Shown: piece after piece, positions 14,522 to 47,770 of the stretch
How the letters are laid out: each line of letters starts with the position of its first letter
Position numbering within the stretch: position 1 is the stretch's first letter
Source: Isurus oxyrinchus
Lineage: Eukaryota
DNA: 64,000 nucleotides
Direction: 5' to 3'
Assembly (NCBI GenBank): GCA_026770705.1
Contig: JANJGN010000150.1
Location: forward strand, 930,001-994,000
Notes under the pieces: model-generated
Seen by the model: the letters and a program-made list of their open reading frames with translations, nothing else
What the model was told of the DNA's origin: nothing
Databases searched by the model: none
Position numbers and translations under genes: made by a program

Positions 14522-14770
14522 TCAGTTTTGCTTGAATCTGATCTGTGCGTATTCTGTCTCCTCTTCCCTGTGGACAGTCCCATCACCACTGGGCACCCTG
14601 AAGACTTGGGGATTGGCGTAGAGAAGGTCGCCGGGTTTGTTGTGATTCCAATGTCCAGCATCGCCTCCCACTGGACCTTCAGAGAGATCCCGGGGAGCTG
14701 GGGTCTCCCCCTCACTAGTTGTGTCTCTGGTTGTGTTCCGGGCCTCAGTAATCAGCACGTTCTGTTTACC
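14522..14770 (-). CDS. Gene B: terminal cytoplasmic exon with LLYANP (degenerate ITIM) and TEYAQI (ITSM/ITIM-like)
   Basis: ccctgtag|GGT AAA CAG, phase 0; ...GDLLYANPQVF...EEETEYAQIRFKQN*; two-Tyr layout of CD33-related Siglec tails. Confidence 0.88.
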   Translation of the reverse strand, partial: GKQNVLITEARNTTRDTTSEGETPAPRDLSEGPVGGDAGHWNHNKPGDLLYANPQVFRVPSGDGTVHREEETEYAQIRFKQN

Positions 14771-15999: not shown

Positions 16000-16081
16000 C
16001 TGGTGTTTCACAGAGAGTGGACTGGGGGTCAATGCAATGTCACTGGTCCCTGAAACTCTCTCCTCCATCGCTGTCTTTCTC
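16000..16081 (-). CDS. Gene B: first cytoplasmic exon (RKTAMEERVSGTSDIALTPSPLSVKHQ)
   Basis: ttgcag|G acceptor, CAG|gtacag donor; 82 nt, phase 2 to 0, links TM and last exon in frame. Confidence 0.82.
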
Positions 16082-16804: not shown

Positions 16805-16901
16805 TTTCTCACACAGATGAAGATGAAGATTCCAGCCAGGAAAACACTCAACATGATCCCAGCCGTGAGCAATCCTACTGTCCATTTACTGGAGTCTCTA
16901 C
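16805..16901 (-). CDS. Gene B: transmembrane exon (GRDSSKWTVGLLTAGIMLSVFLAGIFIFICVRK)
   Basis: ttttacag acceptor, AGAAA|gtaagt donor, 97 nt phase 1 to 2; uncharged hydrophobic span. Confidence 0.88.
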
Positions 16902-17928: not shown

Positions 17929-18222
17929 CTTTGACCCACAGATACACCTTGAACATGGCTTCCCCATGTGGGTTTTGAACTGAGCAGGATGCCATCACTC
18001 CCCCCTCATCCTGGGGTCTCATCAGGGTGAGGGAACCAGTCACCAGATGCCCATCTCTGACCTGCCACGACACAAAACCTCCGTGTGTTTGGTTACCACT
18101 GATGTTTGCACTGGGCAGGTGCCAGGTGAGGTCTCCCGGTGGGTTGGATTCAGCCACACAGACACAGGTGACCCCCTCTGACCTCTGAGTGCACTCCGAT
18201 TGCTGGGAAATCTCCGGCTTAT
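17929..18222 (-). CDS. Gene B: membrane-proximal Ig exon (MAG D5 / Siglec-10/11-like CxC type)
   Basis: KPEISQQSECTQRSEGVTCVCVAESNPPGDLTW...VTGSLTL...SCSVQNPHG; 294 nt phase 1-1. Confidence 0.88.
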
Positions 18223-18956: not shown

Positions 18957-19232
18957 ATTGTACGTTCAGGTGGGTGATGTTGGAGGTGCTGTTACCCACC
19001 GGGTTCCTCGCTGTGCAGTAGAAACCTGCATCATTCTCCCGTGTTACAGGAGTGAAGGAGAGAGTGCGGCTACTTGTGTTTAACTGGGTGCTGGTGTTCC
19101 CCTCGATCCTGAACCAGGTGTAATGAGATATCGGTGGGACACTTTCACTGGAGCAGGTTAATGTGATATTGCTTCCCTCTCTTATCCCACCTGAGGATCT
19201 GCTGATGGACACCATCGTCTCCTGTGGGGGAT
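18957..19232 (-). CDS. Gene B: CD22-like C2/I-set Ig exon
   Basis: PPQETMVSIS...REGSNITLTCSSESVPPISHYTWFR...DAGFYCTARNPVG; 276 nt phase 1-1. Confidence 0.88.
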
Positions 19233-19409: not shown

Positions 19410-21022
19410 ATCCCCTCCCACATTCTTTCTCTGGAACATCGATGACTGTTTCGATGCTGCTTCATGCTCAGTCTGGACCTGGGAAGATTTATCTATTTTG
19501 CTTCCAAGTTTCCCCCCTCCATCATTCTCACAGGGTCCATCTCTGACACTTCCCTTCCCTTCCTTGATCTCCCTGTCTCAACTTCTGGTGATAGACTGTC
19601 CACCAATATCCATTACAAGCCCACTAACCCCCACACAGACCTCGAATTCAGCTCCTCACACCCCGCTTCCTGTAAGGACTCCATCCCATTCTCTCAGTTC
19701 CTTCGCCTCTGTCGTATCAGATCCGATGATGCCACTTTCCAAAACAGCCCTTCTGACATGTCCTGCGTCTTCATTAACCAAGGTTTCACACCCATGGTGG
19801 GTGAGGGGGCCCTGAACCATGTCTGGCCCATCTCCCATGCATCCGCCCTCACACCTTCCTCTCCCTCCCTGAACCATGATGAGGTCCCCCTTGTCCTCAC
19901 TTATCACCCCACCAGCTTCTGCATTCAAAGGATCATCCTCCGCCATTTCCGTCAACTCCAGCATGATGCCACCACCAAACACATCTTCCTTTCACCGCCC
20001 ACTGTTGGCAATCCATAGGGATCGTTCTCTCCAGGACACCATGGTCCATTCCTCCATCACCCTCAACACCTCAACCTCCACCCATGGCATCTTCTCATGC
20101 AATTACAGAAGGTGCAACACCTGCCCCTTTACTTCCCCCCTTCTCACCGTCCAAGGGCCCAAACACTCCTTCCAGGTGAAACAGCATTTAACTTGCACTT
20201 CCCTCAATTTGTTCTACTGCATTCGCTGCTCCCAGTGCGGTTTCCTCTACATTGGAGACACCAAACGGAGATTGGGTGACAGCTTTGCAGAAGACCTTTG
20301 GTCTGTCCACAAGCATGACGCAGACCTCCCTGTCGCTTGCCATTTTAACACCCCACCCTGCTCTCATGCCCACATGTCCGTCCTTGGCCTGCTGCATTGT
20401 TCCAGTGAAGCCCAACACAAACTGGAGGAACAGCACCTCATCTTCCGACCTGGCACTTTACAGCCTTCCGGACTGAATATTGAGTTCAACAATTTCTGGT
20501 CATGAACTCTCTCCTCGATCTTCACTGCTTTTTGAACCCTTTTTTATGTATTCATTTTAATTGTTTTATTTGTTAACTGTTTTCCACTTATTTTTATTAT
20601 TATTATTTGAAATTCATTTCCATTTTTATTGATTGTTTTATCCGCAGATTTTAGTCTATTTTCGATGTTTATTCCCTCCACTGTCCCCTCCCCCTGCCAC
20701 ACCCCCACGAGGGCCATCTGTCTCTTTCCAGAGTGCTTACCCTGGTCCGCCCATTATCACACTCTGCTTAATGTCACCATTAGCACCTCCTTTATCCAAT
20801 ACCACCACTGTTAACAACCCTTTGACCTTTTGTTTATGACATCTTCCACAATCTCTCCATTGCCTCCACCTATCGCTGGTTTTCTATCCAGCTCCACCTG
20901 TCCCATCGCCCCCCCTTAGACAGGATATATTTCACCACATGTCTACTTCCCTTTAGCTCTGAAGAGGAGTCTTACGGACTCCAAACGCTAACCCTGTCTT
21001 TCTCTCCACAGATGCTGCCAGA
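19410..21022 (+). mobile_element. Penelope-like retroelement, 5'-truncated and degenerate (RT C-terminus + GIY-YIG endonuclease + terminal repeat)
   Basis: LPFLDL...HYKPT...HPASCKDSIPFSQFLRL; YCIRCSQCGFLYIGDTKRRL; frameshifted. Confidence 0.85.
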
Positions 21023-21330
21023 TGCTCAGAATCAGCTGGATGGACAGAAAGACCAATGAGTGGCTTAGATCAAGAGGAGATGTTCAGCAATTAAAAGGGT
21101 TGTTCAGGACAGTTAGAGAGAGAAAGGTCGTCAAGTACGGAGATTGGAAACGAAGACCTGACAGCCTTGTCCTCACAACCATTGAAGGAGAAACTGAGAG
21201 CAAAAACAGAAAGGGAGAGGAAAAATTGGATGTGTGGATAACGTGGACTGAGCGAGGATTGAAGAAAACTGGATTAAAAACAACACGATCCCAATGGCTC
21301 CACGGAGACCACGGAGACAACAAACAAACA
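21022..21330 (+). mobile_element. RTE-clade LINE 3' fragment
   Basis: LRISWMDRKTNE...RKVVKYG...IEGE..KNRKG resembles the RTE ORF C-terminus. Confidence 0.55.
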
Positions 21331-21349
21331 AATGTATCTCCACACTCAC

Positions 21350-21416
21350 ATTCCACAGTGATGGTTATGAACCCCTCCACTGCTCCATGTTCATTCTCTG
21401 CCACACACTGATAGTC
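21350..21416 (-). pseudogene. Gene B: 3' remnant of the repeated stalk Ig exon (DYQCVAENEHGAVEGFITITVE)
   Basis: Matches the last 67 nt of the 282-nt exon with donor kept; 5' part and acceptor lost. Confidence 0.8.
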
Positions 21417-21609: not shown

Positions 21610-21906
21610 ATTGTACAGTCAGTACGAGGGTCCGCTCCGATGAAACAGATGGATATCTCACTCTGCAGCTGAGAGTGTGTCCGTGGTGTTTGAGTGATGG
21701 GGTCAGGGTCAGAACAGAAGTATAGGTCAGAGTGACACCATGCTGAGTTACAGTGTTTGAGACTGATCCAGGTACGTCAGTGGGAGTGTCCCAGGTTAAG
21801 ACAGGTGCTGCTGTTCCATTGCACGTTGTGTTGAAGGTGCAGCTTACATCCACACGCTTTCCTGCAATAATTTCAGCAGGGAATATCGTGGGTTTATCTG
21901 TGAAAT
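21610..21906 (-). CDS. Gene B: Siglec D2 C2-set exon
   Basis: 297 nt, near-identical to 5170-5466, intact splice sites. Confidence 0.9.
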
Positions 21907-22277
21907 CTAACAGACAGAGAATGGATCCTTTTAGAGAAATATAACATGAAGCGTCAGCTCAAATAGAAACCACAGACCCACAAGAGAAAGCACTTTTACA
22001 AGGATGATATCAGAACTGAGATGTTTCAACGATACTGATAGACTGTTAGACACAATTAGAGTGATCAATGGGAGTGGAATACATTTAATCATTGATATTA
22101 AAGTGAGTATTAGAGTTTGCTTTAGGACTGAACTGGAAGTAATCACGAGGTTATTGAGAATTAGACAGTGTGTTATAATAAGCTGTGTTTTGTGTTAATG
22201 TGTAAATGTCACAGTTTGTGTTATTTCCCATTGAGTGCTGAATGTGAATTGTTGAGTAATTATAACACAGCACTTAC

Positions 22278-22646
22278 CAGAAACGTGAAGCTGGGTTACA
22301 GGGTAATAGTTATGGCTCGGACCATTGTCAAATTCTATTCTGAAAAAATAAGGTCCTTCATCTTCCCGTCTGATGTTGTTTATAATCAGGGAACAGTCAC
22401 CATCTTTCAAGTCTCCAGACAGCCGGGTCCGATGGTGGTACCGTGGTAACTCGTGACTGTGATCCTTGGAGTGAAAGGCAATGGGAGCCCAGGGAATCTG
22501 ATTCTCATTATTAAACCAGACTCCACCTCGCGGTTGGTTTTCCAGACACGATGGATAACTGTAATGACATGGAATCTGTACACACGAACCTTCCTGTGCT
22601 GTCACCTCTCGTGGAGTGTCACCTTTCCACTCTTGTGAGGGTTCAG
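22278..22646 (-). CDS. Gene B: internal V-set exon V2 (AEPSQEW..., 369 nt)
   Basis: Open frame, ccccag acceptor and G|gtaagt donor, YFFRIE Arg, extra Cys YPSCLEN. Confidence 0.88.
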
Positions 22647-24159
22647 CTGGGGAGAGAAATCTCAATATTTAACTCTGGATGGTTTGTGGATCCACTGAAC
22701 CCGATATTTACAGATGAGGCTGAATTGGGGGGATGGTCAATACTGAGGAGGACTGCAACAAATTACAGGAAGATATACATTCTGATGAAGAATCATACGG
22801 ACTTGAAACGTTAACTCTGTCTTCCTCTCCACAGATACTGTCAGACCTGCTGAGATTTTCCAGCAATTTTTGTTTTTGTTACAGATTTCCAGCATCTGGA
22901 GAATTTTGCCTTTATATTACAGGAAGATATTAATTAACTTGCAGAATGGGCAGGTCATTGACAAATGAATTTCTACGTTAATAAATGTGAGGCATTACAT
23001 TTTGTTCAGGAGAATGAGGAGCTTGTATCTTACCTCGAAAATAAGAATCTAATTGGGAAAGAGGAACAACGTGATCTGGGGCAGAAATACAGGAATCAGT
23101 AAACGTGGGGACACAGGTTAACAAGGGGATTAAACATACATACTAAAGACTCGAGATTATTTCTCCAGGGATTGAATTGAAAAGTAGAGAAGAGATGTGA
23201 AACTTGTCCTGAACCTTGGTCTGACTGCACCTGGAGTCACGTGTGCAGTTCTGGTCCCCATATTGTAAAAAGGATGTGGAGACACTGGAGAGGGTGGTAA
23301 AAAGCTTCACAAGGATGATCTCAGCAATGTGAGGCTTTACCTATCAGGAGAGGATGAACAGGCTGGGACTCTGTTCTCTTGAACAGAGAAGGTTGAGGGG
23401 TGGCCTCATTTGACCTTTGAAGTAATGAAAGGTTTTGATCGAGTAGACATGGAGAGAGTGTTTCCACTCCTCACAATGAAGAAAACCAGAGGCTGACAAT
23501 ATAACATCCTCACTAATAAATCCAATGGGGAATTCAGGAGAAACTTCTTTACCCAGAGAGTGGGGAGAATGTGTGGTTCAAGAATCACTTCATTGGCTGT
23601 GAAATTGATTTAGGATCGTCCTGAGGTGGTGAAAGGCGCTATGGAAATGTGAGACTTGCTTTTGTATTTTGAAAGCAGGTTTCCAAGGATGAGATGGGAA
23701 CTGAGAGGTAACAACAATCAGCAGCAACTTTCCTATTTTCAAACTTGGTGGGGAATGTGTCACTGAGCTGAATACACTTTCACTCCCAGACCCTTGAATT
23801 GCCAGCACTGGGGTGTGGGTGATGGAGCAGCCCACAGCTCATGGAACCCTGGCTCATCATTCTCTCAGAGATCTGGGTCACTGATCCCATTGCTCTCTGT
23901 GGGAGCTTCCTGTGAACAAACTCACTGCCACGTTAGACAGTGATATTGATGTACACTGTCAACACATTTAATCATTCATGTTAAAGTGAGTATTAGAGGT
24001 TGCTTTAGGACTGAATGGGAGCTATCACCAGGTTATTGAGAATCAGACAGTGTGTTATAATAAGCTGTGTTTTGTGTTAATATGTAAACGTCACAGTTTG
24101 TGTTATTTCCCATTGAGTGTTGAATGTGAATTGTTGAGTAATTATAACACAGCACTTAC

Positions 24160-24528
24160 CAGAAACGTGAAGCTGGGTTACAGGGTAATAATTATAGCTT
24201 GGACCATTGTCAAATTCTATTCTGAAAAAATAAGGTCCTGCATCTTCCCGTCTGATGTTGTTTATAATCAGGGAACAGTTGCCATCTTTCAGGTCTCCAG
24301 ACAGCCGGGTCCGATTGTGGAACCGTGGTAACTCGTGACTGTGATCCTTGGAGTGAAAGGCAATGGGAGCCCAGGGAATCTGTTTCTCATTATTAAACCA
24401 GACTCCACCTCGCGGTTGGTTTTCCAGACACGATGGATAACTGTAATGACATGGAATCTGTACACACGAACCTTCCTGCACTGTCACCTCTCGTGGAGTG
24501 TCACCTTTCCACTCTTGTGAGGGTTCAT
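24160..24528 (-). CDS. Gene B: internal V-set exon V3 (DEPSQEW...)
   Basis: 369 nt, open, intact splice sites. Confidence 0.85.
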
Positions 24529-26196
24529 CTGGGGAGAGAAATCTCAATATTTAACACTGGATGGTTTGTGGATGCATTATCTATCCAATATTTACAGATG
24601 TTGCTGAATTGGGGGATGGTCAATACTGAGGAGGACGTCAACAAATTACAGGAAGATATACATTCTGATGAAGAGTCATACAGATTCGAAACGTTAACTC
24701 TGTCTTCCGCTCCACAGATATTGTCAGACCTGCTGAGTTTTTGCAGAATTTTTTGTTTTTGTTACAGATTTCCAGCATCTGCAGTATTTTGCTTTTACAT
24801 TACTGGAAGATATTAATAAACTTGCAGAATGGGCAGGTCATTGACAAATGAATTTCTACGTTAATAAATTTGAGGCATTACATTTTGTTCAGGAGAATGA
24901 GCAGCTTGTATCTTACCTCGAAAATAAGAATCTAATTGGGGTAGAGGAACAACATGATCTGGGGCAGACATACAGGAATCAGTAAACGTGGGGACACAGG
25001 TTAACAAGGGGATTAAACATACAAACTAAACACTCGAGATTATTTCTCCAGGGATTGAATTGAAAAGTAGAGAAGAGATGTGAAACTTGTCCTGAACCTT
25101 GGTCTGACTGCACCTGGAGTTACGTGTGCAGTTCCAGTCCCCATATTGTAAAAAGGATGTGGAGACACTGGAGAGGGTGGTAAAAAGCTTCACAAGGATG
25201 AGCTCAGCAATGTGAGGCTTTACCTATCAGGAGAGGATGAACAGGCTGGGACTCTGTTCTCGTGAACAGAGAAGGTTGAGGGGGTGACCTCATTTGACCT
25301 TTGAACTAATTAAAGGTTTTGATCGAGTAGACATGGAGAGAGTGTTTCCACTCCTCACAATGAACAAAACCAGAGGCTGACAATATAACATCCTCACAAA
25401 TAAATCCAATGGGGAATTCAGGAGAAACTTCTTTACACAGAGAGTGGGGAGAATGTGTACTTTAAGAATTACTTCATTGGTTGTGAATTGATTTAGGATC
25501 GTCCTGAGGTGGTGAAAGGCGCTATGGAAATGCGAGACTTGCTTTTGTATTTTGAAAGCAGGTTTCCAAGGATGAGATGGGAACTGAGAGGTTACAACAA
25601 TCAGCAGCAACTTTCCTATTTTCAAACTTGGTGGGGAATGTGTCACTGAGCTCAATACACTTTCACTCCCAGACCCTTGAATTGACAACACCGGGGTGTG
25701 GGTGATGGAGCAGTCCACAGCTCATGGAACCCTGGCTCATCATTCTCTCAGAGATCTGAGTCACTGATCCCATTGCTCTCTATGGGATCTTCCTGTGCAC
25801 AAACTCACTGCCACGTTAGACAGTGACTATACTTCAAGAATTTCTTCATTGTCTGTGAAGTGAATTGTCATGTGCTGAGGTGGTGAAAGTCGCTACAGAA
25901 ATGCAAGTCTTTACTGTGTCGATTTGCCAGACTTTTAAATGGGGATTAGAGAAATCGATGGGTGTGGATAACCTGATAACATTGATGGACACAGTCAACA
26001 CATTTTATCATTCATGTTAAAGTGAATATTAGAGGTTGCTTTCGGACTGAGCTGGAAGCTACCACCAGGTTATTGAGAATCAGACAGTGTGTTATAATAA
26101 GCTGTGTTTTGTGTTAATATGTAAATGTCACAGTTTGTGTTATTTCCCATTGAGTGCTGAATGTGAATTGTTGAGTAATTATAACACAGCACTTAC

Positions 26197-26565
26197 CAGA
26201 AACGTGAAGCTGGGTTACAGGGTAATAGTTATGGCTCGGACCATTGTCAAATTCTATTCTGAAAAAATAAGGTCCTGCATCTTCCCGTCTGATGTTGTTT
26301 ATAATCAGGGAACAGTCGCCATCTTTCAAGTCTCCAGACAGCCGGGTCCGATGGTGGAACCGTGGTAACTCGTGACTGTGATCCTTGGAGTGAAAGGCAA
26401 TGGGAGCCCAGGGAATCTGTTTCTCATTATTAAACCAGACTCCACCTCGCGGTTGGTTTTCCAGACACGATGGATAACTGTAATGACATGGAATCTGTAC
26501 ACACGAACCTTCCTGCACTGTCACCTCTTGTGGAGTGTCACCTTTCCACTCTTGTGAGGGTTCAG
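26197..26565 (-). CDS. Gene B: internal V-set exon V4 (AEPSQEW...)
   Basis: 369 nt, open, intact splice sites. Confidence 0.85.
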
Positions 26566-28077
26566 CTGGGGAGAGAAATCTCAATATTGAACTCTGGATG
26601 GTTTGTGGATCCACTGAACCCGATATTTACAGATGTTGCTGAATTGGGGGATGGTCAATACTGAGGAGGACTGCAACAAATTACAGGAAGATATACATTC
26701 TGATGAAGAGTCATACAGACTCGAAATGTTTACTCTGTCTTCCTCTCCACAGATGCTGTCAGACCTGCTGAGATTTTCCTGCAATTTTTCTTTTTGTTAC
26801 AGATTTCCAGCATCTGCAGTATTTTGCTTTTACATTACAGGAAGATATTAATAAACTTGCAGAATGGGCAGGTCATTGACAAAGGAATTTCTACGTTAAT
26901 AAATTTGAGGCATTACATTTTGTTCAGGAGAATGGGGAGCTTGTATCTTACCTAGAAAATAAGAATCTAATTGGGAAAGAGGAACAACGTGATCTGGGGC
27001 AGAAATACAGGAATCAGTAAACGTGGGGACACAGGTTAACAAGGGGATTAAACATACAAACTAAACACTCGAGATTATTTCTCCAGGGATTGAATTGAAA
27101 AGTAGAGAAGTGATGTGAAACTTGTCCTGATCCTTGGTCTGACTGCACCTGGAGTCACGTGTGCCGTTCTGGTCCCCATATTGTAAAAAGGATGTGGAGA
27201 CACTGGAGAGGGTGGTAAAAAGCTTCACAAGGATGATCTCCGCAATGTGAGGCTTTACCTATCAGGAGAGGATGAACAGGCTGGGACTCTGTTCTCGTGA
27301 ACAGAGAAGGTTGAGGGGGTGACCTCATTTGACCTTTGAAGTAATGAAAGGTTTTGATCGAGTAGACATGGAGAGAGTGTTTCCACTCCTCACAATGAAC
27401 AAAACCAGAGGCTGACAATATAACATCCTCACTAATAAATCCAAAGTGGAATTCAGGAGAAACTTCTTTACCCAGAGAGTGGGGAGAATGTGTACTTTAA
27501 GAATTACTTCATTGGTTGTGAATTGATTTAGGATCGTCCTGAGGTGGTGAAAGGCGCTATGGAAATGCGAGACTTGCTTTTGTATTTTGAAAGCAGGTTT
27601 CCAAGGATGAGATGGGAACTGAGAGGTAACAACAATCAGCAGCAACTTTCCTATTTTCAAACTTGGTGGGGAATGTGTCACTGAGCTGAATACACTTTCA
27701 CTCCCAGACCCTTGAATTGCCAACACCGGGGTGTGGGTGATGGAGCAGTCCACAGCTCATGGAACCCTGGCTCATCATTCTCTCAGAGATCTGAGTCACT
27801 GATCCCATTGGTCTCTGTGGGAGCTTCCTGTGCACAAACTCACTGCCACGTTAGACAGTGATATTGATGGACACTGTCAACACATTTAATCATTCATGTT
27901 AAAGTGAGTATTAGAGGTTGCTTTAGGACTGAATGGGAGCTATCACCAGGTTATTGAGATTCAGACGGTGTGTTATAATAAGCTGTGTTTTGTGTTAATA
28001 TGTAAACGTCACAGTTTGTGTTATTTCCCATTGAGTGTTGAATGTGAATTGTTGAGTAATTATAACACAGCACTTAC

Positions 28078-28446
28078 CAGAAACGTGAAGCTGGGTTACA
28101 GGGTAATAGTTATAGCTCAGACCATTGTCAAATTCTATTCTGAAAAAATAAGGTCCTGCATCTTCCCGTCTGATGTTGTTTATAATCAGGGAACAGTCGC
28201 CATCTTTCAGGTCTCCAGACAGCCGGGTCCGATTGTGGAACCGTGGTAACTCGTGACTGTGGTTCTTGGAGTGAAAGGCAATGGGAGCCCAGGGAATCTG
28301 TTTCTCATTATTAAACCAGACTCCACCTCGCGGTTGGTTTTCCAGACACGATGGATAACTGTAATGACATGGAATCTGTACACACGAACCTTCCTGCGCT
28401 GTCACCTCTCGTGGAGTGTCACCTTTCCACTCTTGTGAGGGTTCAT
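28078..28446 (-). CDS. Gene B: internal V-set exon V5 (DEPSQEW...)
   Basis: 369 nt, open, intact splice sites. Confidence 0.85.
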
Positions 28447-30114
28447 CTGGGGAGAGAAATCTCAATATTTAACACTGGATGGTTTGTGGATGCTTTATCT
28501 ATCCAATATTTACAGATGTTGCTGAATTGGGGGATGGTCAATACTGAGGAGGACTGCCACAAATTACAGGAAGATATGCATTCTGATGAAGAGTCATACA
28601 GACTCGAAACATTTACTCTGTCTTCCTCTCCACAGATGCTGTCAGACCTGCGGAGTTTTTGCAGAATTTTTTGTTTTTGTTACAGATTTACAGCATCTGC
28701 AGTATTTTGCTTTTACATTACAGGAAGATATTAATAAACTTGCAGAATGGGCAGGTCATTGACAAATGAATTTCTACGTTAATAAATTTGAGGCATTACA
28801 TTTTGTTCAGGAGAATGAGGAGCTTGTATCTTACCTAGAAAATAAGAATCTAATTGGGGGAGAGGAACAACGTGATCTGGGGCAGAAACACAGGAATCAC
28901 TAACCGTGGGGACACAGGTTAACAAGGGGATTAAACATACAAACTAAACACTCGAGATTATTTCTCCAGGGATTGAATTGAAAAGTAGAGAAGAGATGTG
29001 AAACTTGTCCTGATCCTCGGTCTGACTGCACCTGGAGTCACGTGTGCAGTTCTGGTCCCCATATTGTAAAAAGGATATAGAGACACTGGAGAGGGTGGTA
29101 AAAAGCTTCACAAGGATGATCTCCGCAATGTGAGGCTTTACCTATCAGGAGAGGATGAACAGGCTGGGTCTCTGTTCTCTTGAACAGAGAAGGTTGAGGG
29201 GGTGACCTCATTTGACCTTTGAAGTAATTAAAGGTTTTGATCGAGTAGACATGGAGAGAGTGTTTCCACTCATCACAATGAACAAAACCAGAGGCTGACA
29301 ATATAACATCCTCACAAATAAATCCAAAGTGGAATTCAGGAGAAACTTCTTTACCCAGAGAGTGGGGAGAATGTGTACTTTAAGAATTACTTCATTGGTT
29401 GTGAATTGATTTAGGATCGTCCTGAGGTGGTGAAAGGCGCTATGGAAATGTGAGACTTGCTTTTGTGTTTTGAAAGCAGGTTTCCAAGGATGAGATGGGA
29501 ACTGAGAGGTAACAACAATCAGCAGCAACTTTCCTATTTTCAAACTTGGTGGGGAATGTGTCACTGAGCTGAATACACTTTCACTCCCAGAACCTTGAAT
29601 TGCCAACACTGGGGTGTGGGTGATGGAGCAGCCCACAGCTCATGGAACCCTGGCTCATCATTCTCTCAGAGATCTGAGTCACTGATCCCATTGCTCTCTA
29701 TGGGATCTTCCTGTGCACAAACTCACTGCCACGTTAGACAGTGACTATACTTCAAGAATTTCTTCATTGTCTGTGAAGTGAATTGTCATGTGCTGAGGTG
29801 GTGAAACTTGCTACAGAAATGCAAGTCTTTACTATGTCGATTTGCCAGACTTTTAAATGGGGATTAGAGAAATCGATGGGAGTGGATAACCTGATAACAT
29901 TGATGGACACAGTCAACACATTTTATCATTCATGTTAAAGTGAATATTAGAGGTTGCTTTCGGACTGAGCTGGAAGCTACCACCAGGTTATTGAGAATCA
30001 GACAGTGTGTTATAATAAGCTGTGTTTTGTGTTAATATGTAAACGTCACAGTTTGTGTTATTTCCCATTGAGTGCTGAATGTGAATTGTTGAGTAATTAT
30101 AACACAGCACTTAC

Positions 30115-30482
30115 CAGAAACGTGAAGCTGGGTTACAGGGTAATAGTTATGTCTCGGACCATTGTCAAATTCTATTCTGAAAAAATAAGGTCCTTCATCG
30201 TCCCGTCTGATGTTGTTTATAATCAGGGAACAGTCGCCATCTTTCAGGTCTCCAGACAGCCGGGTCCGATGGTGGAACCGTGGTAACTCGTGACTGTGAT
30301 CCTAGGAGTGAAAGGCAATGGGAGCCCAGGGAATCTGTTCCTCATTATTAAACCAGACTCCACCTCGCGGTTGGTTTTCCAGACACGATTGATAACTGTA
30401 ATGACATGGAATCTGTACACACGAACCTTCCTGCGCTGTTACCTCTCGTGGAGTGTCACCTTTCCACTCTTGTGAGGTTCAG
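30115..30482 (-). pseudogene. Gene B: dead V-set exon V6
   Basis: 368 nt (1-nt deletion near the 5' end, GAGGTTC vs GAGGGTTC on +) and AAG>TAG nonsense at ~30303; splice sites intact. Confidence 0.82.
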
Positions 30483-31162
30483 CTGGGGAGAGAAATCTCA
30501 ATATTTCCCTCTAGATGGTTTGTGGATCCACTGGACCCGATATTTACAGATGAGGCTCAATTGGGGGATGGTCAATACTGAGGAGGACTGCAACAAATTA
30601 CAGGAAGATATGCATTCTGATGAAGAATCATACGGACTCGAAACATTAACTCTGTCTTCCTCTCCACAGATGCTGTCAGACCTGCTGTGTTTTTCCTGCA
30701 ATTTTTCTTTTTGTTACAGATTTCCAGCATCTGGAGAATTTTGCCTTTATATTACAGGAAGGTATTAATAAACTTGCAGAATGGGCAGGTCATTGACAAA
30801 TGAATTTCTACGTTAATAAATGTGAGGCATTACATTTTGTTCAGGAAAATGAGAAGCTTGTATCTTACCTCGAAAATAAGAATCTAATTGGGGTAGAGGG
30901 ACAACGTGATCTGGGGCAGAAACACAGGAATCACTAACCGTGGGGACACAGGTTAACAAGGGGATTAAACATACAAACTAAACACTCGAGATTATTTCTC
31001 CAGGGATTGAATTGAAAAGTAGAGAAGTGATGTGAAACTTGTCCTGATCCTCGGTCTGTCTGCACCTGGAATCACGTGTGCAGTTCCGGTCCCCATATTA
31101 TATAAAGAATATAGAGACACTGGAGAGGGTGGTAAAAAGCTTCACAAGGATGATCTCAGCAA

Positions 31163-32180
31163 TGTGGTAGTGTACCCATTAGTAGGAAAACATAATAATT
31201 TTCATAGTGGTAATTTAATTTATTGTAAGCTAGGAATAGAGGGGTCTTGATANNNNNNNNNNNNNNNNNNNNNNNNNNNNNNNNNNNNNNNNNNNNNNNN
31301 NNNNNNNNNNNNNNNNNNNNNNNNNNNNNNNNNNNNNNNNNNNNNNNNNNNNNNNNNNNNNNNNNNNNNNNNNNNNNNNNNNNNNNNNNNNNNNNNNNNN
31401 NNNNNNAAATATGGCTGGGCTGAACGTTTTGAAGTCTCAGAAAAGAAGCTAAATTTGAAATGTTTAATAGGTAAACATAGCCAGAGTTTTAGAATGGGAG
31501 GTGCGAAAGGAGAATTTGCAATTTCTACATAGTCCTGAATTTCAATGAGGTGCTTAAATGTTACACCTAGTGAAGAGAGGCTAAGGCAAACAGCGTTTTT
31601 ATTATTCACAATTTTACTGAGAAACTTGGTACCATGAAAGATTTCTATTATTGGAAATGTAAAGTCCAATGACATATTGGAACAATGGGGTTTACATTCA
31701 GAAAGGGAGAAACATCTCTAAATGAGATTAGGTTATGTGTAAGGGAAGGCATTGAAAGATCTACAAGTGTGAAATGCCTCTGTGCCCCTAATTGCTGTCT
31801 GCAAGAACTGAAGGAAAGAAAATTCACTTTGAATTTAACTGTTCAGGGTATTGTGTTACTTCCTCTGAGGCTTTTTAAATCTGCTTGTTTTACTGTTGCT
31901 TTACCAGAGGAGTAACTGGGAGTCAGATTAATTAGGGAAGCTAAGAATTAGCATAGCAGTAATTTGTAGAACTGTGTATGTGTTTAAAATTATTTCTTTT
32001 ACTAATAAATGCTGAATTTAGTTTTGCCAAAACCCTCTCGACCTGGTGGACTCATTACTACTGAATTCAAGGGAAACAACTCAACATAAAAATACAACTT
32101 GCAAAACAGTTGTGGCAGCTGTTCCAAGTTTACTTTGGGATTTGAGCAGCTCAGCTTTTACCGTCTGCTGTGCCATAACA
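31163..32180. mobile_element. Solo-LTR-like element containing an assembly gap (N 31253-31406)
   Basis: TGTGG...CCATAACA; splits the CR1 fragment of the last array unit. Confidence 0.5.
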
Positions 32181-33386
32181 CTATCAGGAGAGGAAGGACA
32201 GTCCGGGCCTGGTTTTCTCGTGAACAGAATAGATTGAAGAGGTGACCTTGGGGAGGTGGCTACGATTCTGAAATATGCTGACAGAGTCGACGCACAGAGA
32301 GAAAGTTTCCCCAGGTGGAGAGGAGGAAAAGCAGAGGCAGAAATTACCCCCCTCGGGGTGGGGGAGGTGGGGGGGGGTGTTGCCTGTGCAGGGTTGGCAG
32401 GGGTGGGCGTGAACCCGATTGGTGCCCCCGATCGAGGCTGTGCCGCCATTTGACGTGGGCCGGACAGTTCGGGCCCGCCCAGCGTGACGGGTGCCCGGGA
32501 GCGTGGGCGGGGGAGGGGAGGGGAGGGGGATTCCCTGAGGTGCCTCAGGGAGATGAGCTTCAGGTTTAAGACACGTCCCCTCATGTGACAGTGCCTCATG
32601 AGCTGGGACATGCTCATCAGTTTTGATGGAACAATTTTGTGTCATGAAGGAAAACTTCAGGAAAGCTCCTCCGGCCTGCGGATGAGGCTCCATGAAAACT
32701 ACAAAGGATGCCTGAAGGTGAGACGAGCAGCCCTGATCCTTGTTTAAATGACTATTTCAATGTCCTTCACGGGCCTTGGACAATTGGGCGTGCGGGCTGC
32801 GACCCCCGCTGAACTGACATTCGAAATGATGCGCAGGGACGTTGGGACATCCGCCCGACATCATTTCACTGTACGCGAGCAGACCCCACCCACACTCACC
32901 GAGACAAGAATTCCACCCCCCCCTCCCTCCCCCCCGCCAACCCAGCAGGGACCAGCAAGGTATGAAATCCCAGCGGGAATTCAGGAGGAATTCCTTTCCC
33001 CAGGGCTGGGGAGAATGTGCAATTCAGCAATTATCTCATTGTCTGTGGAGTGATTTGGTGCATGCTTGAGGTGGTGAAAGGCGCTATAGGAATGCAAGTC
33101 TTTCGTTTGTTGATTTGTCAGACTTTTAAAAAGCATTAGGTAGACTGATGGGAGTGGATAACCTGATAACATTGATGGACACAGTCAATACATTTAATCA
33201 TTGATATTAAAGTGACTGTTAGCGGTTGCTTTAGGACTGAACTGGAAGCTATCACCAGGTTATTGAGAATCAGACAGTGTGTTATAATAAGCTGTGTTTT
33301 GTGTTAATATGTAAACGTCACAGATTGTGTTATTTCCCATTGAGTGTTGAATGTGAATTGTTGAGTAATTATAACACAGCACTTAC

Positions 33387-33752
33387 CAGAAACGTGAAGC
33401 TGGGTTACAGGGTAATAGTTATGTCTCGGACCATTGTCAAATTCTATTCTGAAATAATAAGGTCCTGCATCTTCCCGTCTGATGTTGTTTATAATCAGGG
33501 AACAGTCGCCATCTTTCAGGTCTCCAGACAGCCGGGTCCGATGGCGGAACCGTGGTAACTCGTGACTGTGATCCTTGGAGTGAAAGGCTATAGACGATGT
33601 TCTCCATTCCTCATTATTAAACCAGACTCCATCTCGTGGCTGAATTTTCAAATCTGTTGGGTAACTGTAATTAAATGGAATCTGTACACAGGAACCTTCC
33701 TGTGCTGTCACCTCTCGTGGAGTGTCGCCTTTCCACTCTTGTGACAGTCCAA
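33387..33752 (-). CDS. Gene B: leader-proximal V-set exon V7 (VGLSQEW...; B-strand Cys>Phe)
   Basis: 366 nt open; SCVQIPFNYS; YYFRIE Arg kept. Confidence 0.82.
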
Positions 33753-34834
33753 CTGGGGAGAGAAATATCAATATTTAACTCTGGATGGTTTGTAGATCCA
33801 CTAGACTTGATATCCACCCCCTCCATCACTGGGGCACAGTGGCTGCAGTGTGGACCATCTACAGGACACACAGGGATCTCCCCAAGGTTTCACAATGGAT
33901 TGAAGAGATTCCTGGACACAGGAGTGGACAAGTTCATTCTACATTGGCTCATGGTCCTCAGGACCCTGTTTACTGAAGCCAGTCTTCCACCCAACACAGT
34001 GTCTACAAGACACACAGGGAAACTATGTAAACATCTCATCTCTCTACACTGACTGGTTTGAGCTTCAGTTTAACTTTCAGTATTTTAAAATTTCCATATT
34101 GTGGTTGCTATGGTGAAACTGTGCAGGAAGTGTGAGGGCTGGACTCTCTGTCTATTCTGACTGCAGCTGTGATGTGGTCGTGGTGATTCTCAGTAAAATG
34201 AAACCCTCTGAGCTCCTCCATCCCCGAGGTTTAGGGAGTGAATTCCAGAGCTCAGGCCCCAGGCAGCTGAAGGCCCGGCCGCCAGTATTGGAGTGATGGG
34301 AATCGGGGGATGGTCAAGAGGCCGGAATTGGAGTAACACAGAAATCTGGGACGTTGGTTGGGAGAGAAGCAGGAGGTTACAGAGATAATGAGTCAGTTTG
34401 TGGCAATGGAGGCATTTCAACACAGTGCTCTGAATTTTATGTTTGTGATGTTGTAGGACCAGGAGTCAGAAAACACAGGGGTGAACGGAGAATGGGGTTT
34501 GGTGTGAGCTTGCACATTGGGTCACTGCTGAATCTGAACCCAAACAGAGCTCAGTAAGAATCTTAAGATTCTGCTCTAGCTACAACAAACTTGCCTATCT
34601 CTGTAACCTCCTCCAACCCCTACAACCCTCTGAGATCTCTGCTCTCCTCCAATTCTGCTGTCAGACAGGGAGTCAGTGTATATCAGTGAGCACAGGGGTG
34701 ATGGGTGAATGGGACTTGGTGTGAGTTTGTACACTGGCTCACTGCTGAATCAGTTCGACAGTCACAGCTTAATAAGAATGATCTTTTACAAAGACTATTA
34801 ATCATAAATCTGTCCGAGATGACGATGATATTAC

Positions 34835-34916
34835 CTTGGAGAAGTGACAGGAGGAAGTAAGATTTCCCGATCATTGTCCACTCCCAGATATTCCATCCAC
34901 TTCTCACTCACAAACT
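34835..34916 (-). CDS. Gene B: leader exon (CDS 34835-34874)
   Basis: Same 40-nt coding segment and splice sites as gene A. Confidence 0.85.
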
Positions 34917-35324
34917 CTGAAAGAGAAAGGAGTTAATGAGACCTCACCTCTTGTCCGACAGCTCTCAAAAGATCAGAACTGCTTTTAAACAATGTCTTCA
35001 CAGACTAATTTGATTCTCTGTGGGATGATAGGTGCTCTGCAGAGAGTTACAAGGCTTTAAGAAAGAAAAACAATGAAGGACTTGCATTTCTATAGCACCT
35101 TTCACCACCTCAGGACATCCCAAAGCTCATGTCCCTGCACTTCCCTCATCCCTTGAGCTAGAAAGATGTTCTGTACAACAGACTTGAGTCTCACACCCAG
35201 ATCTCAATCATCAGTAGAAATCTTTCAAAGGCATCAATCATTGGAATCTGTCTTTATAAAGTCACAACATCAACAAAGGACGGTGTTGGTCATGGAAGTG
35301 AATTCTAATCGTTCCGTTACTTAC

Positions 35325-35450
35325 CCAGGACCTGTCCGACTGCTCGCCTGGGGAGGCACTGCCCACAGGCTCTGCTTGGGCTGAATGATCCCTCTGTGTA
35401 TTTAATTAGAAAGGGTTGATGTGTCTCTGTGTGTCAAAATGAGGAAGTAG
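35325..35450 (-). promoter_or_regulatory. Gene B: non-coding exon 1/promoter (16-nt deletion relative to paralogues)
   Basis: Donor CTGG|gtaagt; GAGGAAGT kept; CCTCTTCCTGTGCTGC segment missing. Confidence 0.6.
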
Positions 35451-35634
35451 CATAGGAGTGAGTAAACAGGCAGTAGGAACGAGTGCGTAATTCCACAATG
35501 TGTTACAACAGAATCAAACTGTTGGCCAATTCATCATGACTCTGTGTTGTTTCTCTTTTGTTGTTTGCTGTTTGGTAACTTCAAATTTCTACCCTGGCTC
35601 CGAGGGTTGATATTTAAATCTGCTGTCGGAGGAT

Positions 35635-36187
35635 AAATACTGAGCAAGTGCTGCAATGTCGGAGGGTCAGTACTTAGGGTGTGCTACACTGTTGGAAGAT
35701 AAAGAGCGAGGGAGTGCTGCTTTATTGGAGGGTCAGCACTGAGGGACTGCTGCAGTGTCACAGGGTCAGTACTGATGGAGCGCTTCACTGTTGGTGGGTC
35801 AGTACTGAGGGAGTGCTGCACTGTCGGCCGGTCAGTACTGAGGGAGTGCTGCTCTGTTGGTGGGTCAGCACTGAGGGAGTGCCGCACTGTCATTGGCCAG
35901 TACTGAGGGAGTGCTGCACTGTCGGAGGGTCAGTACTAAGGGAGTGCTGCACTGTTGGAGGGTCTGAACTGAGGGAGTGCTGCACTGTTGGAGGGTCTGA
36001 ACTGAGGGAGTGCTGCACTGTCAGAGAGTCAGTACTGAGGGAGTGCTGCACTGTTGGAGGGTCTGAACTGAGGGAGTGCTGCAAAGTCGGAGGGTCTGAA
36101 CTGAGGGAGTGCTGCACTGTCAGAGGGTCAGTACTAAGGGAGTGCGGCACTGTCGGAGGGTCTGAAATGAGGAAGTGCTGCACTGTC
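35635..36187. repeat. 33-bp minisatellite (CAGTACTGAGGGAGTGCTGCACTGTCGGAGGGT)n
   Basis: Gives 11-aa TDPPTVQHSLS repeat ORFs; SINE-like unit. Confidence 0.92.
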
Positions 36188-37424: not shown

Positions 37425-37793
37425 CAGAAACGTGAAGCTGGGTTACAGGGTAATAGTTATAGCTCGGACCATTGTCAAGTTCTATTCTGAAAAAATAAGG
37501 TCCTGCATCTTCCCGTCTGATGTTGTTTATAATCAGGGAACAGTCGCCATCTTTCAGGTCTCCAGACAGCCGGGTCCGATGGTGGAACCGTGGTAACTCG
37601 TGACTGTGATCCTTGGAGTGAAAGGCAATGGGAGCCCAGGGAATCTGTTCCTCATTATTAAACCAGACTCCACCTCGCGGTCGGTTTTCCAAATGTGCTG
37701 GATAACTGTAATGACATGGAATCTGTACACACAAACCTTCCTGCACTGTCACCTCTCGTGGAGTGTCGCCTTTTCACTCTTGTGACAGTCCAA
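37425..37793 (-). pseudogene. Orphan V-set pseudo-exon V8 (Trp>stop at QEW)
   Basis: GAG TGA AAA in place of GAG TGG AAA; no leader exon upstream and no C2 downstream. Confidence 0.85.
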
Positions 37794-39123: not shown

Positions 39124-39446
39124 AGGGCAGGAATCAAGAAGCCCGTTCGCAGGATTACCAAAAGAAAGTGAATAACAATTTATACTTAATGGGAAGAGAC
39201 TGCTGATTGGTTGGCAAGTGGTCTCTGATAGGTGGAGGTGTTGGCATGGAGAATGGTGTGTGCGAGATGTAAACTTTAGACAGCTTGTCTCTTCATTCAG
39301 CAATAATCAAATAAAGATCAATTAACTTCTATCGACTGTGAAGCACTTTGAGAGGACTGAGAATGTGGACACTGAGAACGGGCTGCACTGTCAGAGGGTC
39401 AGCGCTGAGGGAGTGCTGATGTAGAATGAAGGGTGTCAGTACTAAC

Positions 39447-39743
39447 CTTGCACAGTTAGTACGAGGGTCTGCTCCGATGAAACAGATGGATATCTCACTC
39501 TGCAGCTGAGTGTGTGTCCGTGGTGTTTGAGTGATGGGATCAGGGTCAGAACAGAAGTATAGGACAGAGTGACACCATGCTGAGTTACAGTGTTTGAGAC
39601 TGATCCAGGTACGTCAGTGGGAGTGTCCCAGGTTAAGACAGGTGCTGCTGTTCCATTGCACGTTGTGTTGAAGGTGCAGCTTACATCCACAGGCTTTCCT
39701 GCAATAATTTCAGCAGGGAATATCATGGGTTTATCTGTGAAAC
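39447..39743 (-). CDS. Gene E: Siglec D2 C2-set exon
   Basis: 297 nt, open; donor CAAG|gttagt. Confidence 0.85.
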
Positions 39744-40602
39744 CTAACAGACAGAAAATGGATCCTTTTAGAGAAATATAACGTGAAGCATCAGTTCAAA
39801 TAGAAATCACAGTCCCACAAGAGAAAGCACTTTTACAAGGATGATATCAGAACTGAGAGATTACAATGATCAGGAGAGAATTTCCTGCTTTGAGACTTTG
39901 GTGTTTCTGTCTCTCAGCTTAATACACGTTCACTCCAAGACATGTGAATTGAGAACACTGGATGAGAGAAGAGGCTCAGACCAGAGATTGGAGTTAAAAG
40001 CAGAATACTGCGGATGCTGGAAATCTGAAACAAAAACAAAAATTACTGGAAAGACTCAGCAGGTCTGACAGTATCAGTGGAGAAGAAGACAGGGTTAACG
40101 TTTCGAGTCTGTATGACTCTTCATCAGACCAGAGGTTTGAGTTCACTGGCTTCTCATTTCCTTAGTGATCTGGGTGATTTATTACATTGTGGTTTGTTGG
40201 ATCTTGCTGTGCACAAACTGACTGCTGTGTTTTACATCAGTGACTACAATTCAAGAATAATTTCATTGGCTGTGAAGGGATTTGGATCCTCCTGAGGTGG
40301 TAAATTGCGCTGCAGAAATGCACATCTTTCTTTTATTAATACGTCAGACTTTTAAACAGGACAGGAGAGATTGATGGGAATGGATTACCTGATAATACAG
40401 TTAATGCTTTTCGTTATTGATATTAAAGTGTGTATTAGAGGTTGCTTTAGGACTGAACTGGAAGTTATCACCAGGTTATTGAGAATCAGACATTGTGTTA
40501 TAATAAGCTGTGTTTTGTGTTAATATGTAAACGTCACAGTTTGTGTTATTTCCCATTGAGTGTTGAATGTGAATTGTTGAGTAATTATAACACAGCACTT
40601 AC

Positions 40603-40977
40603 CAGAAATGTGAAGCTGGGTTACAGGATAGTAGCTGTAACTATTCCTGCTGTCAAATTCTATTCTTAACAAATAAGGTCCTGCATCTTCCCGTCTGATG
40701 TTGTTTATAATCAGGGAACAGTCGCCATCTTTCAGGTCTCCAGACAGCCGGGTCCGATGGTGGAATCTTTGATCCCTGTGACTGTGACCCTCAGAGTGAA
40801 AGGCTATAGACCGTTTCGGCTGTGGGTTCCCATCTATTCCTTTCAACCAGATTCCGACACGTGATCTCCCTACGAAATTTGATAAGTAACTGTAATGACA
40901 TGGAATCTGTACACAGGAACCTTCCTGCGCTGTCACCTCTCGTGGAGTGTCACCTTTCCACTCTTGTGACAGTCCAA
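40603..40977 (-). CDS. Gene E: divergent V-set exon V9 (375 nt)
   Basis: YSYLSNFVGRSRVGIWLKGIDGNPQPKRSIAF...YLLRIEFDSRNSYSY; Arg kept. Confidence 0.87.
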
Positions 40978-41678
40978 CTGGGGAGAGAAATATCAATATT
41001 TAACTCTGGAAGGTTTGTAGATCCACTAGACTCGATATCCACCCTCTCCATCACTGGGGCACAGTGGCTGCAGTGTGGACCATCTACAGGACACACAAGG
41101 AACTCCCCAAGGTTTCACAATGGATGGAAGAGAATCCTGGACACAGGAGTGGACAAGTTCATTCTACATTGGCTCATGGTCCTCAGGGACCCTGTTTAGT
41201 GAAGCCAGTCTTCCACCCAACACAGTGTCTACAAGACACACAGGGAAACTGTGTAAACATCTCATCTCTCTACACTGACTGGTTTGAGCTTCGGTTTAAC
41301 TTTCAGTATTTTTAAATTTCCATATTGTGGTTGCTATGGTGAAACTGTGCAGGAAGTGCGAGGGCTGGACTCTCTGTCTATTTTCACTGCAGCTGTGACG
41401 TGGTCGTGGTGATTCTCAGTAAAATGAAACCCTCTCATCTCCTCCATCCCCGAGGTTTAGGGAGTGAATTCCAGAGCTCAGGCCCCAGGCAGCTGAAGGC
41501 CCGGCCGCCAGTATTGGAGTGATGGGAATCGGGGGATGGTCAAGAGGCCGGAATTGGAGTAACACAGAGATCTGGGACGTTGGTTGGGAGAGTTGCAGGA
41601 GGTTATGGAGATAGAGATAAGAATGATCTTTTACAAAGACTGTTAAACATAAATCTTCCAAGCTGACGATGATATTAC

Positions 41679-41758
41679 CTTGGAGAAGTGACAGGAGGAA
41701 GTAAGATTTCCCGATCATCGTCCACTCCCAGATATTCCATCCACTTCTCACTCTCAAG
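41679..41758 (-). CDS. Gene E: leader exon (CDS 41679-41718)
   Basis: MIGKSYFLLSLLQ, donor gtaat. Confidence 0.83.
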
Positions 41759-42168
41759 CTGTGAAAGAGAAAGGAGTTAATGAGACCTCACCTCTTGTCC
41801 GACAGCACTCAAGAGATCAGAACTGCTTTGAGACAATGTCTTCACAGACTAATTTGATTCTCTGTGGGATGATAGGTGCTCTGCAGAGAGTTACAAGGCT
41901 TTAAGAAAGAAGAACAATGAAGGATTTGCATTCCTATAGCACCGTTCACCACCTCAGCGCATTCCAAAGCTCATGTCCCTGCTCTTCCCTCATCCCCTGA
42001 GCTAGAAAGATGTTCTGTACAACAGACTTGAGCCTCACATCCAGATCTCAATAATCAGTAGGAATCTTTCAAAGGCATCAATCATTGGAATCTGTCTTTA
42101 TAAAGTCACAACATCAACAAAGGACGGTGTTGGTGGTGGAAGTGAATTCCAATCGTTCCGTTACTTAC

Positions 42169-42312
42169 CCAGGACCTGTCCGACTGCTTGCCTGGGGAGG
42201 AACTGCCCACACGCTCTGCTTGGGCTGAATGACCTCTTCCTGTGCTGCTCCCTCTGTGTATTTAATTAGAAAGGATTGATGTGTCACTGTGAGACAAAAT
42301 GAGGAAGTTGGA
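42169..42312 (-). promoter_or_regulatory. Gene E: exon 1/promoter
   Basis: Conserved cassette with donor and GAGGAAGT. Confidence 0.6.
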
Positions 42313-42537
42313 TCAAAGTGACAGAGCAACTCATGTTTTGAGATGTTGGTGAGCTGTTAACCGTTTGTGCCCTGACCCTGTGGTGATATTTCTGCTCACA
42401 GGTGGACAGTCATTGACCAGGAGTTTCTCCTGTGGGTCAGTGGGTTTCACAGCCGAATTCAGGGGGTCAGAATGTTGTGGGGTTCAAGACCCGATTCAGG
42501 GGACGTCTGCCCCACAGAGTACACTGAAATTCCCCAG

Positions 42538-42926: not shown

Positions 42927-43068
42927 CCAGGACCTGTCCGACTGCTCGCCTGGGGAGGAACTGCCCACACGCTCTGCTTGGGCTGAATGACCTCTTCCTG
43001 TGCTGCTCCCTCTGTGTGTTTAATTAGAAAGGGTGGATGTGTCTCTGTGAGTCAAAATGAGGATGTGC
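42927..43068 (-). promoter_or_regulatory. Second, upstream copy of the exon 1/promoter cassette
   Basis: Donor intact; ETS core changed to GAGGATGT. Confidence 0.5.
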
Positions 43069-47628: not shown

Positions 47629-47770
47629 CCAGGACCTGTCCGACAGCTCGCCTGGGGAGGAACTGCCCACACGCTCTGCTTGGGCTGAATGACCTCTTCC
47701 TGTGCTGCTCTCTCTGTGTATTTAATGAGAAAGGGTTGATGTGTCACTGTGAGTCAAATCAGGAATTGGG
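47629..47770 (-). promoter_or_regulatory. Ectopic copy of the exon 1/promoter cassette inside a gene C intron
   Basis: 47465-47770 matches 10380-10690; donor intact. Confidence 0.5.

Follow-up and report, generated by a model that had tools for sequence, protein, structure and literature searches.

A tandem array of internal-type V-set exons in an Isurus oxyrinchus Siglec gene, and the case for a multi-headed receptor

How many sialic-acid-binding heads may a single Siglec gene supply, and would they be used together or one at a time? The question is raised by a locus of Isurus oxyrinchus on contig JANJGN010000150.1, of which a stretch of 64,000 nt was analyzed (the window). Here an array gene on the minus strand, called gene B below, places six Siglec-type V-set exons between its leader and its constant region; its order is a 5' untranslated region (5'UTR) exon, the leader exon, the six V exons, C2, two further Ig exons, a transmembrane (TM) exon and two tail exons (Table 1). 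Its exon anatomy, its repeat structure and the family of each exon are established, and gene B belongs to a clustered Siglec gene family. The favored reading, which is moderately probable, is that a multi-V Siglec with a tail of inhibitory type had its internal V exon amplified in tandem, in a lineage-specific manner, which resulted in a variable multi-headed receptor. The internal V exon, which follows the first V and precedes C2, would have been amplified to five tandem copies, and the default product would present several sialic-acid-binding V heads in series on a C2-Ig-Ig stalk, followed by a TM segment and a tail carrying LLYANP and TEYAQI.

A first-pass annotation of this DNA had described a single leader followed by V7, a dead V6, V5, V4, V3 and V2, and then by C2-Ig-Ig-TM-tail, and all of these features are indeed present on the minus strand in that order. 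Its further statements, that the array units contain no leader, that all V exons are phase 1-1 and that all keep the F-strand arginine, hold as well. Each gene of the cluster has one leader exon, the copies being located at ~10.1, 34.8, 41.7 and 59.4 kb, and a search of the window found none within the sequenced part of the V array. The splice sites are uniform (a slash marks the exon boundary): every V exon has an acceptor of the form ...TCTCCCCAG/ and a donor /GTAAGT, and a multiple alignment of the V exons gives TTTCTCTCCCCAG/ as the common acceptor and TTCTG/GTAAGT as the common donor. The arginine codon occurs in all six, dead V6 included. A BLAST search with one V-exon open reading frame detects ten copies in the window, six of them at 22.2-33.8 kb in one orientation. 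A serial multi-V product would be the default because all copies are phase 1-1 with unchanged splice sites, and we infer the co-inclusion of these particular V exons in one product; the number of heads would probably vary by cassette skipping.

The V exons and the exons that follow them have the features of Siglecs. V2-V5 and V7 score above the Pfam curated cut-off for both V-set and Ig_CD22, and the best PDB relatives of the V domain are Siglec-5, Siglec-7, CD33, Siglec-10, Siglec-8, MAG and sialoadhesin (E-values 1e-17 to 1e-11). The motifs YFFRIE (V2-V5) and YYFRIE (V7) align with YFFRVE of Siglec-5 and YFFRME of Siglec-7; the arginine of the Siglec V domain has been termed "essential" (PMC6288428). 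V2-V5 carry the Siglec cysteine pattern (a B-E pair within the sheet and one further Cys for a bond between domains) as C21, C26 and C84, together with the F-strand Arg. Farther downstream, a C2-set domain, a TM segment and a tyrosine-motif tail complete the set (C2-set_2, Ig_3, a hydrophobic TM segment and TEYAQI). Within the tail, LLYANP resembles an immunoreceptor tyrosine-based inhibitory motif (ITIM) and is not a canonical one, having Pro at +3, and TEYAQI fits the immunoreceptor tyrosine-based switch motif (ITSM) pattern TxYxx[V/I]. The great white shark also has LLYANP, and Scyliorhinus canicula has LLYASI. Each V head is presumed to bind sialic acid.

The array itself extends over 22078..31166 (minus strand), where a higher-order repeat takes the place of six equal units. 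It comprises five units in the order A-B-A-B-A, with A of 1883 bp, B of 2036 bp and a two-unit superunit of 3919 bp; a 155-bp indel separates the A-type units from the B-type ones. Tandem Repeats Finder, with a longest period of 500, is blind to the array, and a BLAST self-comparison was used, in which 22078-27249 matches 25997-31166 at 96.5%. By alignment, the units diverge by 1.9-3.8% in exons and 3.4-6.4% in introns. Codons at which V2-V5 can be told apart include 12, 16, 48, 61, 69, 71, 83, 96, 109 and 111 of the V exons. The likely history would be that A and B units arose by one duplication and that the A-B pair was then itself duplicated.

Arrays of this kind invite suspicion of the assembly, and the first-pass annotation had named a collapse or misjoin as what would overturn its interpretation. 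A collapsed or over-duplicated assembly is unlikely, because the copies are 2-6% diverged, whereas duplicates made by the assembler would be near-identical. The broader alternative, that the number of units is wrong or that a contig with V7 and the leader was misjoined to the array contig, is highly unlikely. It draws on a gap of estimated length that lies, as had been reported, exactly between V6 and V7, on the break in unit homology 86 bp before that gap, and on the contigs of the best DNA run (short reads), which at ~100-150 nt are too short here for copy counting and give no confirmation of copy number. It is opposed by the divergence, the type-specific indel and the regular A-B-A-B-A order, by DNA contigs that match unit-specific sequence exactly (for example, 24529-24636), and by the placement of a first-type V and leader upstream of an internal-type V, which is the layout of the relatives discussed below. 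Collapse is thus countered by the diverged and ordered copies, and order and content across the gap stay unproven.

The surroundings of the gap offer some explanation for its presence. It lies 770 bp upstream of the V6 acceptor, inside the V7-V6 intron, so that no reading frame crosses it. The homology of the V6 unit to the other units ends at 31166, and a 68-bp stretch at 32181-32248 is a ~80% match to the unit sequence that starts 10 bp past this break. The DNA between the break and 32181 resembles a dispersed repeat also found at 11.7-12.0 kb. This fits a dispersed element inserted around the gap, where the assembler broke, with continuity, order and completeness unproven. The gap may contain further units or exons.

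Whether several V domains are plausibly joined in one chain can be judged from other elasmobranchs, which were compared at the protein level only. A search with V3 of 1.84 billion representative proteins returned 32 matches at E-values up to 1e-30, the best with two to four matched stretches, and these are shark and ray RefSeq models labelled Siglec-8, -12, -13, CD33-like and similar. A second search, combined with local domain counting in which V domains 0-7 residues apart were taken as adjacent, found two to five directly adjacent V domains in RefSeq models of at least 12 elasmobranch species. Five occur in Scyliorhinus torazame (XP_072326181); four in S. canicula (XP_038670868), Mobula hypostoma (XP_062913366) and Hypanus sabinus (XP_059815055); three in Mustelus asterias (XP_078092344) and S. 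torazame; and two in Carcharodon carcharias (XP_041037226) and in Cetorhinus, Rhincodon, Hemiscyllium, Chiloscyllium and Pristiophorus. The closest relative is the great white model XP_041037226, with the layout leader-V-V-C2-Ig-TM-tail; compared with V4 and the exons that follow it in gene B, its second V, C2, Ig and TM show 92.5%, 94%, 93% and 100% identity.

The same models point to flexible use of the V exons. In great white isoform X4 (XP_041037230), precisely the first V, of 123 residues, is missing, and the leader joins the second V directly. Isoforms X1, X2 and X3 of S. canicula (XP_038670868-74), which are taken as products of one gene because their accessions are consecutive, have four or three V domains each and between them use no fewer than six different V exons. 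As automatic predictions, these annotations suggest both V concatenation and cassette-type choice among the relatives. The multi-V layout thus appears not to be unique to gene B, as it is predicted by annotation in many elasmobranchs, where multi-V Siglecs would be the rule. A search for literature on elasmobranch or multi-V fish Siglecs found no paper. The premise of the earlier annotation that a single V is the norm, with Siglec-XII as the familiar exception, is accordingly mammal-centered, given the 2-5-V models in at least 12 elasmobranch species.

A second line of evidence is a cysteine that distinguishes internal from first V domains. The array exons begin (A/D)EPSQEW and carry SYPSC, with an extra Cys in the BC loop at position 33, which is present in V2-V6. 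The first-type V exons in the window, V7 included, begin VGLSQEW and have SYPSH, SYPSD or SYPTD, with no extra Cys. Among 171 related domains, the extra Cys occurs in 1/102 single, 1/27 first, 12/15 middle and 20/27 last V domains, or, pooled, in 32/42 middle or last domains against 2/129 single or first ones; all are raw counts that ignore kinship. In the Mustelus and Scyliorhinus models, the last V has both AEPSQEW and SYPSC, and SYPSC alone is found in the second V of great white and of basking shark and in one stingray V. The array exons carry the cysteine of V domains that are not first in their chain, and the array would thus be an amplified exon type that elsewhere follows another V, which argues for stacking over a choice of leader-to-V joins. 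In the V-domain tree, shark V domains form an unresolved comb, within which carcharhiniform internal V domains group together (support 89/85) and the array copies cluster only with each other (84/80). Since the tree is unresolved, the case for an old "internal V" type rests on the AEPSQEW and SYPSC motifs.

It may be that the extra cysteine has a structural role. It lies seven residues past the B-strand Cys; in C2 of gene B, the acceptor Cys of the interdomain bond lies six past, and in the C2 domain of CD33 this spacing is seven residues. The cysteine count is also in agreement, as the sum of 3 for a first-type V, 4 for each of n internal V domains and 3 for C2 is even for any n. The extra BC-loop Cys may thus accept an interdomain disulfide from the preceding V, as C2 normally does. 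A more ambitious proposal, offered tentatively and as a possibility short of probable, is that the internal V exon is a purpose-built stacking module: the heads would be stapled by disulfides into a rigid rod capped by one first-type V, and copy number together with cassette splicing would set the reach and avidity of an inhibitory-type receptor, a germline rheostat of sialic-acid sensing expanded repeatedly in sharks and rays.

A model analogous to Dscam, in which competing RNA pairings admit exactly one V exon per transcript, is the least credible of the alternatives and is very improbable. An intron 1 element of 30-48 nt (35060-35135) is 82-90% complementary to one or two elements per inter-V intron and to one downstream of V7, as a docking and selector arrangement would have it. 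The element is, however, a dispersed repeat, with further copies at 48.3 kb and in other genes, and falls in a bin that is read very deeply; the docking arm precedes the leader exon, so that the start codon would be looped out by pairing; between intact copies no more than 4-7 of 122 residues change, leaving little diversity to select; and the relatives carry 2-5 V domains together. The complementary elements were therefore rejected as a Dscam-type docking and selector cluster, being copies of a dispersed repeat with an arm that precedes the leader. The first-pass annotation had left concatenated V domains, a Dscam-like library and a gene-conversion reservoir side by side; concatenation is the best supported of the three, by the symmetric phase 1-1 exons, the 2-5-V relatives, the extra Cys and one V-V junction, and the strict choice of one among many is not upheld.

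In gene B, the intron 1 element at 35060-35135 is inverted relative to copies in the introns that follow the V exons, at 23618-23662, 25501-25545, 25865-25912, 27536-27580, 29419-29463, 29783-29830 and 33067-33107. A like pair, 59188-59263 versus 61011-61039, is found in the plus-strand gene at 59-62 kb. The element is assigned to a dispersed repeat because the bin of one array copy is very deep in all runs. Such inverted pairs could favor exon skipping or back-splicing.

Sequencing runs provide a limited view of splicing in this family. Three small RNA-like runs cover V and C2 exons plus known repeats and hardly any unique intron bins, and the DNA run covers all 30 bins. The RNA-like joints 21906/22278 and 21906/26197 have GT..AG ends on the minus strand, and none such is listed for the DNA run; use of a V donor and of the C2 acceptor (21906) is confirmed by these joints, which are not specific to a V copy. 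One contig in run X15 joins a V 3' end via TTGGACTG to a V 5' part. The junction is V to V and of the VGLSQEW kind that the great white model shows; it comes from some family member and is not assignable to gene B. Contigs resist assignment because three window genes show no difference over the first 100 nt of C2 and the V 3' ends are near-identical among copies.

Two candidate splicing events were set aside. Skipping from V4 to C2 was considered from a 258-nt V-C2 contig with a single mismatch to V4, but V2 and V4 are themselves only 2 positions apart over the 158 covered. A joint 22645->24209 in run X15, potentially from a V to an internal-type V start, was not counted, its middle part being "not known". 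At positions 21702 (G>A) and 24480 (A>G), both given for the plus strand, all four runs, the DNA run included, differ from the base in the window; these mismatches most likely reflect contigs of near-identical paralogous exons or an individual difference.

The condition of the two leader-proximal V exons is the principal complication. V6 has a 1-bp deletion in a CCC run as well as an in-frame TAG and is thus dead twice over. V7 departs from the Siglec cysteine pattern, C26 of the B strand (the intradomain disulfide cysteine) being replaced by Phe, with IPF in place of IPC; this Cys is kept by nearly all of the 171 related domains. Going by the Siglec-7 and CD33 structures, from which we take the roles of the V-domain cysteines, the B-strand Cys is presumably the partner of the E-strand Cys, and V7 is for this reason probably destabilized. 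A productive mRNA would have to skip dead V6, and damaged V7 may be skipped too. The six V exons of the first-pass annotation do exist, and as coding capacity the number is overstated: with V6 dead and V7 damaged, the sound heads would be four at most, or five if V7 is counted.

These lesions also suggest an alternative in which gene B is decaying or unproductive, its leader transcripts running through V7 and V6 and being destroyed, with the downstream exons merely not yet mutated. The frameshift and stop of V6 between intact splice sites, the lost V7 Cys and the other relics of the cluster (the dead V at 37425-37793, the truncated gene at 39.4-42.3 kb and what is left of a stalk exon at 21351-21416) would all be in keeping with decay. 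However, the frames are open and the splice sites good in eleven other coding exons (leader, V2-V5, C2, two Ig, TM and two tail), and V skipping is annotated in relatives, so inclusion of V6 is not obligatory. Decay of the whole locus is therefore distinctly unlikely, although gene B does, from its sequence, appear partly decayed.

Somewhat less unlikely, with an appreciable chance of being correct, is that gene B works as a one- or two-V Siglec and that the extra copies are young, neutral, perhaps polymorphic in copy number, and mostly skipped or unproductive. One copy, V6, is already dead; the closest annotated relative, XP_041037226, has only two V domains, and a one-V isoform of it exists; and the only long V-C2 contig shows a single V beside C2, which is uninformative on what lies upstream. 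The ratio of nonsynonymous to synonymous changes per site (pN/pS) among the copies is also not clearly below 1, given the very few differences. Against this, the splice sites are all intact and identical, and skipping of four strong symmetric exons would need an active mechanism; models with 3-5 V domains occur in several species; and every structural residue is kept in all intact copies.

Several observations count against the amplified multi-headed receptor that is favored here. No read or contig is assignable to gene B, the multi-V RefSeq models are automatic predictions, and the link of V7 and the leader to the array crosses an assembly gap. V6, with its intact splice sites, brings in a stop if it is included, V7 is without a nearly invariant Cys, and the 5' half of gene B may be decaying. 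Among V2-V5, pN/pS is 0.37-0.83 with only 7-12 differences per pair, judged too few for a separation from neutrality, with no formal test made. Exon divergence is about half that of introns, but the same is true of dead V6, and the ratio is therefore not credited to selection. Selection on the V copies was thus considered and dropped, neither measure giving evidence of it.

If the heads of gene B are co-expressed, how far and how avidly the receptor senses sialic acid would depend on exon copy number and splicing. A single lectin head is the textbook Siglec design, beside which primate Siglec-12, with two heads, passes for an oddity; sharks and rays appear to add heads by amplifying one exon. 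Rather than a unique structure, gene B would be a further example of a trait that runs through the family and is already recorded in public annotation. It adds a case with an inhibitory-type tail in which the amplification appears to be in mid-course, with four intact copies, one dead and one damaged.

Table 1. Exons of gene B, the assembly gap and V exons of neighboring genes (window positions; a slash marks the exon boundary)
Feature	Positions	Strand	Remarks
Exon 1 (5'UTR)	35325..35430	-	3' end 35325 firm, 5' end approximate; donor CTGG/GTAAGT
Leader exon	34835..34916	-	ATG at 34874; encodes MIGKSYFLLSLLQ plus one base, phase 1 end; acceptor ...TTTCAG/, donor CAAG/GTAATA
V7, first-type V exon	33387..33752	-	366 nt, phase 1-1, frame open; starts VGLSQEW
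Assembly gap (N)	31253..31406		within V7-V6 intron
V6, dead internal-type V exon	30115..30482	-	368 nt, phase 1-1, splice sites intact
V5, intact internal-type V exon	28078..28446	-	369 nt, phase 1-1; (D)EPSQEW start, SYPSC, YFFRIE
V4, intact internal-type V exon	26197..26565	-	369 nt, phase 1-1
V3, intact internal-type V exon	24160..24528	-	369 nt, phase 1-1
V2, intact internal-type V exon, last before C2	22278..22646	-	369 nt, phase 1-1
C2-set exon	21610..21906	-	phase 1-1; Pfam C2-set_2; consensus splice sites
Ig exon (Ig_3/Ig_2)	18957..19232	-	phase 1-1, open; consensus splice sites
Membrane-proximal Ig exon	17929..18222	-	phase 1-1, open; 93% identity to great white XP_041037226
Transmembrane exon	16805..16901	-	open; hydrophobic; 100% identity to great white protein over 33 residues
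Cytoplasmic exon 1	16000..16081	-	open; consensus splice sites
Cytoplasmic exon 2	14522..14770	-	LLYANP, TEYAQI, stop codon
V exon of neighboring gene	6325-6690
V exon of neighboring gene	37425-37793	-	stop
V exon of neighboring gene	40603-40977	-
V exon of neighboring gene	60350-60718

Exon 1 of gene B is conserved with the first exons of the neighboring genes, and extra exon 1 copies with no adjacent leader exon are present at 42927-43048 and 47629-47750. Just upstream of Siglec first exons there is a 33-bp minisatellite of ~17 copies with roughly 80% identity (35623-36187, 50191-50849 and 57700-58358). The next gene upstream of gene B (39415-42321, minus strand) has a leader at 41679-41753, its V exon and a C2 at ~39448-39741, and no stalk, TM or tail exons were found between it and the gene B promoter. 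It is followed by the lone minus-strand V exon at 37425-37793 with its in-frame TGA, and the two together look like a truncated gene plus a relic V.

Stalk exons have also been rearranged in this cluster. Positions 1-4826 (minus strand), downstream of the C2 of the gene with the V exon at 6325-6690, consist of ~1.05-kb tandem units of 82-90% identity. These give a 90-97% match to the stalk Ig exon in the Siglec models of great white and basking shark and are thus an amplified stalk exon. In gene B, a 22-residue remnant of a stalk-type Ig exon (…AENEHGAVEG.ITITVE) lies at 21351-21416 on the minus strand, 200 bp downstream of C2, and is adjoined by retroelement-like open reading frames at 19464-21411 on the plus strand. 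Insertion is the probable cause of the loss of this stalk exon.

Gene B is most similar to the RefSeq multi-V elasmobranch models, with which it shares a leader, predicted head-to-tail V domains, internal V domains with an AEPSQEW or VGLSQEW start and SYPSC, and then C2. It differs from the great white model in having more internal V copies, where the great white has one, and in its dead exon and damaged first V. It differs from the stingray models in that the internal V domains there have lost the Arg that those of gene B keep. In the 4-V models of Hypanus sabinus (proteins P0002 and P0155), Arg is found in the first V only and domains 2-4 have Lys or Ser; the shark models inspected and the V exons of the window have Arg in all V domains.

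Beyond the elasmobranchs, the familiar comparison is with primate Siglec-12 (human Siglec-XII), a CD33-related Siglec that has, as gene B would, more than one V-set domain per chain, along with a tyrosine-motif tail. However, Siglec-12 has two V domains, whereas gene B has five or six V exons. The Arg codon is present in all of these, and four are intact and of one internal type with an extra BC-loop Cys; the origin of gene B is independent and lies in a shark lineage. Sialoadhesin-like and CD22-like models of teleosts and reptiles (Paramormyrops XP_072564550 and Pelodiscus XP_075763978) have several Arg-bearing Siglec-type V domains per chain. In those models, the repeated module is a V plus a C2, with ~110 residues between V domains, in contrast to the placement of V directly on V.

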